This document shows, one piece after another, positions 24,810 to 37,600 of a DNA stretch of 64,000 nt (its first letter is position 1; each line of letters starts with the position of its first letter). The stretch is from assembly GCA_001179505.1 (NCBI GenBank), contig CDMY01000269.1, forward strand, positions 62,001 through 126,000, in the 5' to 3' direction. Under the pieces are notes generated by a model. The model worked only from the letters and a program-made list of their open reading frames with translations, searched no databases and had not been told where the DNA came from. This DNA comes from Vitrella brassicaformis CCMP3155 (lineage: Eukaryota > Protista > Chromerida). Made by a program: the position numbers and the translations under genes.

Positions 24810-25392
24810 TCAGGAGGTTGCCAACACCAGAATGATGATCAGCGCGATGACAGCGATGGGGGCGATGAGGCATTAGCGGGCCCACTTGTACCTCTCCGTC
24901 CCCCTCTTGGCGTCCAGGTTGACACAGAAGGCGATGCAGCCGATGATGGGGAAGAATATCGACAACACGCACGATATCTGCCCACACACACACAGAGGGA
25001 GAATGTTTGGCTGTGCGAGCAGCTGCCCACATCTCTTTGTGTGTCACCTGTGCGCAGGTGAGCATAGATTCTTCAGCTCTGTCCTGCACCTCGACCACGT
25101 GGATGACGTGAGCTCCGCCATTTAATGGCTGCGGCTGGACGTACGGCTGCTGGACGACGGGCCCTCCCACGCCTCCCTGGACCATCTGGGTATACGTGGG
25201 ACCAGCCGCCATCGCCAGCGGCTGTCCGATGGCGTACGGCGCCGGCTGGACGACCACCGTAGTGGTGGACGGACCCGCGGACGACTGCGGTACGGGCGTG
25301 GGCGAGTACTGGGGGTTGACGGGCGAGGTGTGGCCTTCGATTTCTTCAGAGGAGTAAGTCGGAGGAGCGTCGACGGACGGAAAGGATGGCAT
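24810..25392 (-). pseudogene. CD225-like paralog 3 with a nonsense codon before the second hydrophobic segment
   Basis: MPSFPSVDAPPTY...|ISCVLSIFFPIIGCIAFCVNLDAKRGTERYKWAR*CLIAPIAVIALIIILVLATS*. The TAA at 24873-24875 aligns to TAC (Tyr) in paralogs 1 and 4. Confidence 0.7.
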
Positions 25393-25576
25393 TGCGGACG
25401 ACTGTTAGGCTGATGTCAACGAACGAAGAAAAGTCCAGCAGCAGGGCAAAACGGATTGGAAGGAAGATGGAATGTGCGCCTTTGGGACACTCAAAGGCAG
25501 CTCGCAACCCGAGAGTTAAGAGAGCTCAAAGGAAGCTCGCAACCCGAGAGTTAAGAGCGGATGTCCTCCTGGGTTC

Positions 25577-25899
25577 TGTTGAGGAAATGATGTGTCGGCC
25601 CGCAGATGGATAACCTCGGCTATAGCCTGATTGGTTTCTCAACAGGTCATGAGCTCCACTAACCTCAGTTGGAACCCCGATGAGCGGTGATGCCTAGGGC
25701 CAAACCGGGCGGAGAACAATCCTGCTGAGCGCTGCGGAGGGGTCGCGAGTTCGATTCCTGGAGCAACACCGGAAACCTTGGAAAGGCAGGAGCGGAAAGG
25801 GGGTATCCTATCTCTGCGGTCCGAAGGGGGGTGTTGAGGAAATAATGTGTCGGCCCGCAGATGAATAACCTCGGCTATAGCCTGATTGGTTTCTCAACA
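25577..25899 (+). mobile_element. Complete TRIM (terminal-repeat retrotransposon in miniature), 323 bp
   Basis: 68-bp LTRs at 25577-25644 and 25832-25899 (66/68 identical) with TGTTGAG...CTCAACA termini. 5-bp target-site duplication GGTTC at 25572-25576 and 25900-25904. PBS-like GGTCATGAGCTC directly after the 5' LTR. Polypurine tract GAAGGGGGG directly before the 3' LTR. No coding capacity. Confidence 0.92.
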
Positions 25900-26193
25900 G
25901 GTTCCTCTGTGCATGTGGAGCGTGCGTGGCTGATTCCTGTTGCGTCGTTCGGTTGATTGTGGGCTGGCCGTTTAGGACATAGGTTTAAACCCTTTGGTTT
26001 CTCGCCTATCTCTTCGTGCCCTCTCTTCCCCGTCCCCGTGTCGCACATTGCTGTCGCCGACTCTCGCCGACGAGCACTCACGTTTCCTGAACAAAAAAGG
26101 CATTGCCGGCAAAGATCTCGGTCCTCAGCTAGTGAATCACATCCTCAGCCTCTTTCCTCCCAACAGTCCTTGCAAGCCGCAGCCGCATCAGTC

Positions 26194-26785
26194 ATGACGT
26201 ACCCCTCGGTTGAGCAGCCTTCTCTCGCCCAGCCGCAGCCCGTCAACTGGCCGTCCGCCGACATCGCCGCACCCACCACTGCACCGGCATACGATGTGCC
26301 CCAGACGATGCCGGCTGTCGTCGGCCAGCCACTGGCGACGGCAGACACAGCCGGAAGGCCCGAGGGCGGTGATCAGCCGCAGTATGTGCAGCCGCAGACG
26401 GTGCGGCCGCAGTTGGGTGGCTCTCATGTGATCAACGTGCCGGAGCCGGTAGTGTACAATCCGCCACACGAAGATGATAAGTCAGGACGGCTCACCTGCT
26501 TAATGGTGAGATAGATCGATGTGGCCAGGAGAGAGAAACGGCCAGCCGTACATTCTTTCCCCTGTGTTGTGTTGTGTTGTCTGTTGATCATTGCAGGTGT
26601 CCTGTGTGTTGTCGATCTTCTGGCCCATCGGCTGCATCGCCTTCTGCCTCAACATGGACGCCAAGGAGGGGTCGGAACGGCGCAAGTGGGCCCGCTACTG
26701 CCTCTACACGGCCACCATCGGCATGATCATCGGGGTCATCTGGTTTGCCATGGGTGGAATGCAATCCTCTTATTCCTCTTATTAA
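26194..26785 (+). CDS. CD225-like paralog 4, intact
   Basis: MTYPSVEQPSLAQP...RLTCLM|VSCVLSIFWPIGCIAFCLNMDAKEGSERRKWARYCLYTATIGMIIGVIWFAMGGMQSSYSSY*. The unit 25980-27010 resembles 20390-21410. Confidence 0.72.
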
Positions 26786-34684: not shown

Positions 34685-37600
34685 CGGCATCGATGGCCGC
34701 CCCCATGGCCTCCCTGGTGGCCGCTGAGAGGGGCACCGACTGCACTGGGGTGCCAGGCAGGACCACCTCGACGGCCAGCTGTGGCAGGGCAGACCCACTC
34801 CTGAAGCGCAGACAAAGGGGGGCGTGTCGGGATGGGCTCGGCCGAGTGCCTCCAGCTGCTGGTAGAAGTGGCGAATCAGATGCCCCTGCTGCACCGGCGT
34901 CACACGAGGGCCGCGACTGGCCGTGCGATTCGTCGGCGGCTCAGGCAGAGCGTCTTGCTGCAGCCGACTGAGGGTGTCGCTCTTGAGCATAGGATTGCGG
35001 TCGAGTCGGTCGTCTCTGCGGCGCCGTGGCTTGGTGTCACGGCGAGCCGTAGGGTGCAGAGGCACACCGCCCCCTACACCACCTTGACGCAGCTGAGGCG
35101 CCTGTCGCTGTTTGCCGGGCAGAGGATCGTCGCCATCGTCGGCACTTCTCGAGTCTGCCGGGTCGCCATCCAGCATCGCCGCTCGCTCGGACGTGTGGGA
35201 CTGCCTCTTCAAGATGGCCCGTAGGTGGCTGATGGCGGCCTCCTTAGCACCCCGTAGCCCAGCTGCTTGACGGAGAAGGACTTGCTCTTCCTCCTGCCGC
35301 CCACCTGCCAGCGGGCTTCCCATGCGTTTTTCGTCTTGTCGAACCTCACGCCCCTGACGCCGCTCTGGTGCTTAGATCTCTGCTTTATTGCCGCTTGGCC
35401 AGTGCGGTCCATCTCGAGACGGTGCTGCTCGGCCAACGCCTGACGCACATTTGAGAAAAAATAGAGGATAAGATGGAGGCAGGGTGCTGGAATGCGATGT
35501 CGGTACCTTTGCTTTGTCGAAGCCATGGTCCTTGACATAGAAGGTCTTGAGCTCCTCGTTGCCGCTGCTCTTCTCGTACCACTTCGCTTTCCACGACTGC
35601 TCCCTTGCATACCACGAGACGCCCGACACGTGCGACTGGTGTTCGGCAGCCTTTCGTGTGACGGCCTCGCCCTCATCCCTGGCTGTCTTGTTGGCCTGTG
35701 GCCTCGGCTTCCCCTCGATGGATGGTTTGCTGCTGCTGGACAGAGCCGTATCTCTGCGGCGGTGCTTTCGAGAGGGGCTGTGGTCGGCCGACTCGTCACG
35801 CAGCGAACCCTCTGGCCGCACCGAACCACTCCCCTCCTGCTGCCGGTCGAGCCATGAGAGGTCGATGACGCTCGCATGGTCGCCGAGTTTGTCACGGTGG
35901 ATGGTGTTGCGGTACGCCACACATTGGCGGAGAGCCTCGATGATGCTGTCACGGGAGTCAGGGGCGTCGATGACGAACTTGCGGAAGCCCAGGTGCTTGC
36001 CCTGGCTGTCAAAGTACGCGGCGAAACGTCTCGGTGAAGTCATACAGACGCCGAATCTGACGAGACGCCAAAGATAGGATGCAAAAATATGTCGCTCCCC
36101 CTTGTCGTGTGTGTTGCTCACCCTCCATTGGCGGGCGGACAGGCGTCGTTGAACCGTCGTACCAGTCGGTTCACCAGGGCCGTGGCGAGAACAGGTCCAG
36201 TCAGCCCATCCACGTCGGCCTCATCGTGCGCCCCCTTGCGGTCGACAGTCTGGCGCTTGGGGGCGGGGCGACGCGGCGGGTCCCCTTGGCCTGGACGATG
36301 GGGCGATGATGATGAGATTTGCGACTCCGTCTCAGACGATAAAGACATGGCGGCCTGCCGGCTTGACTGACTCGCTTGTTGTTTGCGGCTGCGACGGCCA
36401 GGAGGAGGGCGGTCGACCTCGATGTCTCCACGGGGCTCCACCTCCTCTGACACCGCCCCTCCCTTAGGTGTGTGGCGCCCCTCCCGTCTATGTCGGGGCG
36501 GTGTCTGATGGCGGGAAGCCTCCGCTCGATCGCAACGAGCGGCAGAGTTGGGAGAGGGAGCTGGATCGTGGACGGGCTGGCCGTCGCTGCCCAAGAAGGT
36601 GTAGTGCTGCTCTTGCATGGCCTGTCTGTGTGCTATCGCGGCGTTCTTGGCGACTTCATGGCCGAGCTCTTTGACGGAGAAGGACTTGGTCCTTGTTTGG
36701 CCGCCCTCCTTCCAGGTGGCAACCCACGCGTTGTTCTTGTAGTGGACGCCCCTGACGCCGCTCTGGTGCTCCGCTCGCTTCTTGATGGCCGCCCGGCCAG
36801 TGCGCTCCATCTCGCGACGATGCTGCTCGGCCAACGCCTGCTAAAAAAAGGATCACGGACATGAGAGAGTGCGTGTGTCATGCGTTGTTCTTTCTTGCCT
36901 TCTGCACCTTTGCTTTGTCGAAACCGTGCTCGCTGACGTAGAAGTACTTGCGTTCCTCCTTGCCGCCCTCGTACCACGACGACACCCAGGCCTGTTGCTG
37001 CTCGAGCCAGCGGACGCCCGAGACGTCTGACTGATGCTGGGCGGGCTTGGGGATGACGGTCTTGCCGCCTTGGGTGGCCTTGCGCCTCGGCTGTCCGTCG
37101 GACAAGGACATGTCACCATGCCGATCCATGTCATCACGACCACCGGCACCGCCCCCATCCTACACCCTGCCGTGGTGCTTCGGACGCTTGGACGCCGTAC
37201 CATCACTCGTGCCCTTGCCGGTTTCACGATTCTGCAGCTGTTGCTGTGGGTGCAGGTTGATCCTCTGCACGTCGATCATGATAGCACCACCACCAGGGCA
37301 GCTGTCCTGCTGATCCAAGTGCCGAGATGACGCCATGCTGCCGCCCCGCATATCGATATCATTCTCCTGTGCAGCGGGGGGCGACGGCTGAGGGCGGGAA
37401 GCTTCGGGTCGACCGTGGCCGGCGGCAGAGTGGTGAAGAGAAGGCGGCTGATGGACGGGCTGGCTGTCGCTGCCCAAGGGGGTGGAGCGCCTTTCCTCCA
37501 TAGCACGGCGGTGCGCGATCGCTGCCTGCTTGGCAGGCTCGTAGCCGAGCTCAGCGACGGAGAAGTACTTGGTCTTCGTTTTGCCCCCCACCTGCCATTT

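Follow-up and report, generated by a model that had tools for sequence, protein, structure and literature searches.

A 64,000-nucleotide stretch of Vitrella brassicaformis DNA (hereafter the window) carries at positions 25577–25899 a compact unit in which two 68-nt direct repeats flank a short interior. The locus raises the question of whether this unit is a mobile element in its own right and, if so, on whose machinery it depends. An earlier sequence-only reading had taken it for a structurally complete, non-autonomous LTR mini-retrotransposon. We verified all of the structural hallmarks behind that view, and the element is very probably a non-coding TRIM/SMART that keeps only the cis-acting parts needed by the Ty1/copia replication machinery.

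Architecture, setting and copies of the 323-bp unit

We read the window from 25300 to 26200 and delimited its repeats with a repeat finder. The 5′ LTR (25577–25644) and the 3′ LTR (25832–25899), both on the forward strand like the other features of the element, differ from each other by 2 mismatches, and the 5′ LTR is the same as the majority form of the family LTR. The repeats seem to be 71 nt long because GGT opens both the primer-binding site (PBS) and the 3′ flank, but their true length is 68 nt. Both have TG...CA ends, and their termini, TGTTGAG/CTCAACA, form inverted repeats of 7 bp, or of 10 bp if one G-U pair is allowed. The target-site duplication (TSD) GGTTC at 25572–25576 is identical to the one at 25900–25904. 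Between the LTRs, the 187-bp interior (25645–25831) comprises a leader, a variable middle and a conserved 3′ part. It opens with the putative PBS GGTCATGAGCTCCAC (25645–25659), a variant of the family site GGTYATGWGCCCAC with C opposite A37 of the tRNA and one inserted T, and it closes with the polypurine tract (PPT) GAAGGGGGG (25823–25831), which adjoins the 3′ LTR. No open reading frame of at least 90 amino acids was detected in the interior. The element is thus non-coding and, with a total length of 323 bp, falls under the TRIM limit of 1 kb. On re-reading the window, the LTRs, their TG...CA ends and 7-bp inverted termini, the TSD, the PPT and the coordinates previously assigned to them all proved correct, as did the description of the interior as 187 bp of non-coding DNA.

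The element sits in an intergenic spacer. An open frame has its first ATG at 26194, ~290 bp downstream of the element, and the neighbouring open frame on the other side lies on the minus strand. Judging from frame orientation and spacing, it plausibly occupies a promoter region. Neither of the two flanking open frames matched a Pfam family. The frame at 26194 begins a block that is duplicated 5.58 kb upstream with 94% identity; the duplicated block starts 131 bp downstream of the element, and the paralogous spacer falls 332 bp short of this one, a difference that approximates the length of the element plus its TSD. The two spacers are too diverged to be aligned across the insertion point, and no paralogous empty site could be read from them. 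Immediately upstream of the element, at 25490–25557, are two tandem 33-nt units (CTCAAAGG.AGCTCGCAACCCGAGAGTTAAGAG), 35 bp apart.

We searched the genome of Vitrella brassicaformis (72.7 Mb in 1064 scaffolds; PMC4501334) using the 323-bp unit as the query and obtained 41 matches. Six of these are full-length copies with 84–100% identity, located on contigs C269 (the window), C340, C261, C307, C477 and C515. Isolated 68-bp units account for ~30 matches, many of them 97–100% identical to the window repeat, and a few partial relatives make up the remainder. Nineteen copies were extracted with their flanks, and TSDs were assessed in 18 of them, comprising five intact full copies and 13 solo units. 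A perfect 5-bp TSD was found in 16 of the 18 copies, every one different, where the chance probability of each perfect 5-bp match is ~1 in 1000. All five intact full copies have one (GGTTC, GCTCT, AGCCG, GAGGC and AGGGG), and so do 11 of the 13 solo units, each with its own sequence; of the remaining two solo units, one matches at four of five positions and the other lies directly next to a different element. The TSDs of the full copies bracket the entire unit and not the single repeats (5/5 intact copies), a hallmark of LTR elements that are inserted by integrase and later reduced to solo LTRs through LTR–LTR recombination. The recurrence of the same structure in five more full copies and in ~30 solo repeats with TSDs of their own places the window structure far beyond chance. 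The genome thus holds what the sequence-only reading had said to look for, namely multiple copies with different 5-bp TSDs, and it holds solo LTRs in addition. Together, these data provide every structural feature expected of a TRIM/SMART: TG...CA repeats, TSDs of one fixed length within the 4–6 bp range that differ in sequence from copy to copy, a PBS, a PPT, a non-coding interior and a length under 1 kb.

Two further loci were considered as larger relatives of the element and rejected. The one on C797 is a 5′-deleted relative of the TRIM; the one on C832 has an assembly gap within it and different LTR types at its two ends. A metagenome scan with the LTR core returned zero matches. Near the copy on C261, at a distance of ~350 bp, lies a near-perfect, GC-rich hairpin of ~32 bp (L003:2167-2234), whose match to an Rfam miRNA family is spurious.

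Alignment of the six full copies showed that the PBS-side and PPT-side junctions are conserved in all of them. Averaged over pairs, the LTRs are ~95% identical and the interiors 89%, with the first half of the interior more variable; the majority line of this alignment was used solely for counting differences. The two LTRs of a copy differ at 2, 4, 5, 5 or 8 of 68 positions, and the window element, having the smallest count (2/68), is the least diverged full copy. To this extent the earlier description of it as young holds. The description is weak in absolute terms, as 2/68 corresponds to ~3% and the PBS has acquired an extra base, and it is merely relative because 68 bp gives very coarse dating.

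The primer-binding site and the initiator tRNA

In the window, GGTCATGAGCTC stands directly 3′ of the 5′ LTR, and the earlier reading took the core of the site, GGTTATGAGCCC, to be the Ty5 form. The site had previously been placed directly after the LTR and counted as differing from the Ty5 form at 2 of 12 positions. The placement stands; in alignment with the other copies, the T in the window sequence ...GCTCC turns out to be an extra base and not a substitution.

A contiguous-pattern search for the anticodon arm of the nuclear initiator tRNA-Met gave no match, because the gene contains an intron; a pattern gapped after the anticodon recovered it on the minus strand of C378 (C378:53638-53708), and the 5′ two-thirds of the gene were read by follow-up patterns. 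The gene has the anticodon CAU and a 9-nt intron after position 37. The encoded tRNA has U8, A9 and A14, GG in the D-loop, a paired D stem (GCUC/GAGU), an anticodon stem (GUGGG/CCCAC) with three closing G:C pairs, and the T-loop AUCGAAA, which supplies A54 and A60. Three G:C pairs together with A54 and A60 are hallmarks of the eukaryotic cytosolic initiator tRNA. Position 1 is apparently C, as opposed to the usual A.

The sequence GGTTATGAGCCCAC is the reverse complement of positions 27–40 of the spliced nuclear initiator tRNA, with 14 of 14 positions matching. It constitutes the PBS of the TRIM copy on C307 and recurs as such at no fewer than nine sites of another LTR family, B, described below. 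The TRIM family site GGTYATGWGCCCAC is complementary to the same tRNA positions, and the arm itself reads GUGGGCUCAUAACC. The complementarity to the initiator tRNA-Met anticodon arm that had been predicted for this organism was therefore found, and in the C307 copy it is exact. The other five of the six full copies depart from perfect complementarity at one or two positions. Most TRIM copies have C at PBS position four, opposite A37, and some have T at position eight; the window copy combines the C opposite A37 with one inserted T. In initiator tRNAs, A37 is usually hypermodified and a poor pairing partner, and the PBS position opposite it may therefore be unconstrained. The elongator tRNA-Met, which is encoded by an intron-bearing gene (C322:120101-120184) and is the only tRNA-Met among the 34 nuclear tRNA loci fetched, does not match the PBS.

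A plastid primer was also considered. The anticodon arm of the plastid tRNA-fMet, GGGCUCAUGACC, exactly complements GGTCATGAGCCC; its gene, on contig C467, belongs to the wrong compartment. C467 is 71 kb long and contains more than 20 tRNA genes arranged in clusters (Asn-Ile(GAU)-Arg; fMet, Ala(UGC), Lys). It is evidently the plastid genome left within the nuclear assembly, and its tRNA is therefore an unlikely primer for a nuclear element. The initiator-type tRNA-Met of C467 has G37.

Priming from the anticodon arm of tRNAi-Met by a half-tRNA is known in Drosophila copia and yeast Ty5 (PMC5371799). Judged by its complementarity, the Vitrella PBS would be of this kind, as it is predicted to pair with the anticodon stem-loop and not with the 3′ end of the tRNA.

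Several observations on tRNA genes were made in passing. Introns of 9–10 nt after the anticodon are present in three nuclear genes, those for initiator Met (C378), elongator Met (C322) and Tyr (C376:82972-83054), and because of such very short introns, contiguous anticodon-arm patterns miss nuclear tRNA genes. In the window itself, a 92-nt tRNA-Ile(UAU) call at 36457–36548 presumably contains an intron as well. Contigs C991, C1054, C166 and C847 carry tRNA-Ile(GAU)-tRNA-Ala(UGC) pairs with an encoded CCA, and C991 additionally has a bacterial-type tRNA-fMet. These contigs resemble bacterial rRNA-operon spacers and look like residual bacterial contamination of the assembly.

Longer LTR families and candidate partners

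A non-coding element of this kind would need a coding partner, for which the earlier reading had proposed a Ty1/copia element. Matches to RVT_2, the copia reverse transcriptase, number at least 63 in the genome, several of them in open frames of more than 1000 amino acids. One such frame, on C515, contains gag_pre-integrase, rve (integrase core), SH3_retrovirus and RVT_2 domains. When the element's junctions were mapped genome-wide, the LTR-to-PBS junction returned only the known TRIM copies, and the PPT-to-LTR junction returned the TRIM copies plus a sister family, A2. The PBS type is common to the TRIM and two other LTR families, A2 and B.

The LTR of A2 is 213 bp long (for example L012:1291-1503 on C430), three times the length of the TRIM LTR, and has an unrelated middle. 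The two LTRs have in common their first ~27 nt (TGTTGAGGAAATGATG..CCCGCAG) and their last ~12 nt (GTTTCT(T)CAACA). Next to the A2 LTR comes GGTTATAGAGCCCACTGAG, which is the TRIM type of PBS with an extra A, and then ACTGA as in the TRIM; the purine tract before the A2 LTR resembles the TRIM PPT. LTR termini, PBS, leader start and PPT are thus common to both, as one would expect if the TRIM were a parasite of the A2 machinery. Copies of A2 are found on C430, C369, C374 and C926 and range from 1.4 to 5.15 kb, the 5.15-kb copy lying at C430:41353-46501. The locus C369:40556-44241 is a tandem arrangement (LTR-interior-LTR-interior-LTR) of deleted derivatives, with spacings of 1392 and 2079 bp. 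In the C430 copy, no Pfam domain was detected in the last 1.3 kb, and no RVT_2 match was found on that contig; A2 is for this reason no more than a candidate partner. Upstream of the window element, no A2-like LTR remnant was found within the window.

On C430, a reversed solo TRIM LTR immediately adjoins the end of the A2 3′ LTR (L012:1504-1571), with no recognisable TSD. On C926, an A2 LTR lies 3.3 kb upstream of a copia reverse transcriptase, and the locus was examined as a possible autonomous element. It was rejected, since the sequence after the LTR is not a PBS and the LTR is accordingly the 3′ LTR of another copy.

Family B (C89, C416, C832, C861 and C1037) has LTRs ending in ...TTACGCAACT, followed by the exact initiator-arm PBS GGTTATGAGCCCAC. 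After the PBS comes a frame of 471–529 amino acids, which has no Pfam match and is possibly Gag. In a deleted copy on C861, the PBS region is joined to an SH3_retrovirus domain. Many family B copies are incomplete because they run into contig ends or assembly gaps. The family B LTR was considered as a long form of the TRIM LTR and rejected, as no similarity was found between the two. For a coding copia element on C515, in the stretch C515:46400-53300, a pattern match to TGTTGAAGAAACG after a purine tract suggests a 3′ LTR beginning with that sequence.

Among the genome matches, comprising the A2, B and RVT_2 loci as read, no coding element with the TRIM's own LTRs was found. The Ty1/copia partner thus stays a proposal: copia pol genes are present, and the cis-acting parts recur in A2 and B, but a coding element with matching LTRs was not found.

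Alternative readings, proposed replication and known TRIMs

Solo units outnumber full copies by ~5 to 1 and deviate slightly less from the majority sequence than full-copy LTRs do. Both observations are unusual for such short LTRs and count against the TRIM reading. An alternative that would account for the excess of solo units is that the 68-bp unit is itself mobile as a MITE-like DNA transposon, with the 323-bp form as a composite or a rarer product. Several solo units are indeed 100% identical to the 5′ repeat of the window, the termini are inverted over 7 bp perfectly and over 10 bp with one G-U, and the solo units carry their own 5-bp duplications, 11 of 13 of them perfect. We nevertheless regard this account as very unlikely, since in all five intact composites the TSD flanks the whole 323-bp unit and not each 68-bp unit, and the interior is homologous in 6/6 copies. 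It also leaves aside that the 5′ junction coincides exactly with a tRNA-complementary site and the 3′ junction with a purine tract, that both junction features appear in longer LTR families too, and that solo LTRs keeping their TSDs are the expected product of recombination. A different view of the same repeats, and the one that had been named as capable of overturning the first reading, is that they are C/D box snoRNA genes or snoRNA-derived retrocopies. In C/D snoRNAs, the C (RUGAUGA) and D (CUGA) boxes form a kink-turn beside a terminal stem. The repeat has AUGAUGU near its 5′ end and CUGA near its 3′ end, a 10-bp terminal stem and a length typical of such RNAs. However, no Rfam family matched the window or four other copies at E-values up to 10, and the repeat folds no more stably than shuffled sequences (z-scores of -0.8 to -1.0). 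Among 23 LTR copies, U is changed to C in the C-like box of seven, and G is changed to A in the D-like box of four. On the 3′ strand, CUGA stands four unpaired bases away from the stem; a canonical kink-turn would not have its unpaired bases on that side. The fixed 5-bp TSDs, the PBS and the PPT are left unexplained. With Rfam, fold and box conservation all failing to support it, the snoRNA interpretation appears extremely improbable.

Transcription by Pol III, in the manner of the Cassandra/Helenus kind of TRIM ('TRIMp3'), was weighed on similar grounds. An A-box-like motif in the LTR (TAGCCTGATTGG) precedes a B-box-like motif in the leader (GGTTCGAACCC) by 44 nt, a spacing that is tRNA-like in most copies; a second B-box-like motif, GTTCGATTCC, lies at 25749–25758, where it had been described before, and the interior is free of any run of four T. 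Against this, a covariance model that we trained on 21 nuclear tRNAs from the same genome scored held-out control tRNAs at 42–68 bits. In the TRIM copies, it found only an 11-nt B-box in the interior, at 7.2 bits and an E-value of ~3. There was no Rfam tRNA match, the first B-box is mutated in the window copy, and the second varies at its core and shifts in position among copies. The B-box-like motif reported earlier is therefore real as a motif, whereas a functional role in Pol III transcription is unsupported, the 11-nt match being at noise level. Judged from the sequence, the small-RNA-derived Pol III promoter inside the LTR that characterises the TRIMp3 elements Cassandra, Helenus and Ajax appears to be absent, and there is very little to be said for placing the element among them. 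Another thought concerns the 68-bp LTR, which may be too short for a conventional U3-R-U5 organisation, so that transcription would be unconventional and use either a split Pol III-type promoter or obligatory host read-through. We think this very unlikely. Were it true, a promoter-seeking and still-active TRIM in an alveolate would be possible, and the high ratio of solo to full copies could reflect an unusual propagation of the 68-bp unit.

The preferred reading, a TRIM/SMART that relies on Ty1/copia proteins, can be set out as a working mechanism. The parts kept by the element would be the LTR termini for integrase, the PBS, a short leader, the PPT for plus-strand priming and the second LTR. 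The template RNA could plausibly come from genes nearby whose transcription reads through into the element. This RNA would be packaged and reverse-transcribed in trans by copia Gag-Pol. As with Drosophila copia and yeast Ty5, cleavage of tRNAi-Met in its anticodon arm would supply a 5′ fragment as the primer. Integrase would then insert the element via a 5-bp staggered cut, and the solo repeats would arise by LTR–LTR recombination.

The TRIM class is already well known, and priming of TRIMs from the initiator anticodon arm is already published for fungi (PMC10886601). The biology of the Vitrella element is otherwise ordinary for a TRIM. Ours is, as far as we found, the first detailed anatomy of such a family from the chromerids, which are free-living and closely related to the apicomplexan parasites. 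A Vitrella copia lineage that primes from the spliced tRNAi-Met arm, as complementarity predicts, would widen the range of the half-tRNA mode. For practical purposes, masking or annotating the ~40 short, gene-proximal copies is advisable, as they could otherwise pass for regulatory motifs or genes for small RNAs.

The TRIMs described so far come from plants, green algae, insects (Hymenoptera), cestodes, bivalves and fungi (PMC10886601), and no described TRIM family from alveolates was found in the literature searched. The genome paper of Vitrella tabulates a bulk class, 'putative TRIM/LARD', amounting to 93 kb, and describes no element (PMC4501334, supplementary file 2). The earlier statement that no TRIM was known from chromerids thus holds for described families, although a bulk entry was already in print. 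In that study, LTRharvest and LTR_FINDER were set to LTRs of 100–1000 bp and a spacing of 1–15 kb, and de novo repeat clustering was also run (PMC4501334). With these settings of LTR length and spacing, the two LTR programs could not detect the element.

The closest parallel in size is the SMART/FRetro129 element of grasses, which is 292 bp long and has 85-bp LTRs, a 5-bp TSD and a copia partner (PMC3281118). Both it and the Vitrella element (323 bp, with LTRs of 68 bp) are tiny and non-coding, have TGT...ACA ends and a 5-bp TSD, and leave solo LTRs. In both, what links the presumed Ty1/copia partner to the small element is not the whole LTR but a short motif within it, together with the PBS and the PPT. 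The two differ in that they have no sequence kinship and that the host here is an alveolate alga; moreover, solo units exceed full copies in Vitrella, whereas the reverse is true of SMART, and the Vitrella copy number (~40) is far lower. The element had been thought very small for a TRIM; it is not the smallest, since the smallest reported TRIM, CcaRetroS9, is 233 bp long with 52-bp LTRs (PMC4717578). TRIMs in general, CcaRetroS9 included, have the same architecture, size class and near-gene location as the Vitrella element. With regard to priming, the nearest counterparts are the Helenus TRIMs of fungi and their Copia partners, in which the PBS matches the anticodon loop of spliced tRNA-iMet and insertions have 5-bp TSDs (PMC10886601). 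Helenus LTRs carry a tRNA-derived Pol III promoter, in contrast to the Vitrella element, in which none is detectable. The two are alike in the intron-bearing tRNA gene, in a PBS that fits the spliced form and in the 5-bp TSD, and with Helenus, copia and Ty5 alike the Vitrella element shares a PBS directed at the anticodon arm of the initiator tRNA-Met.
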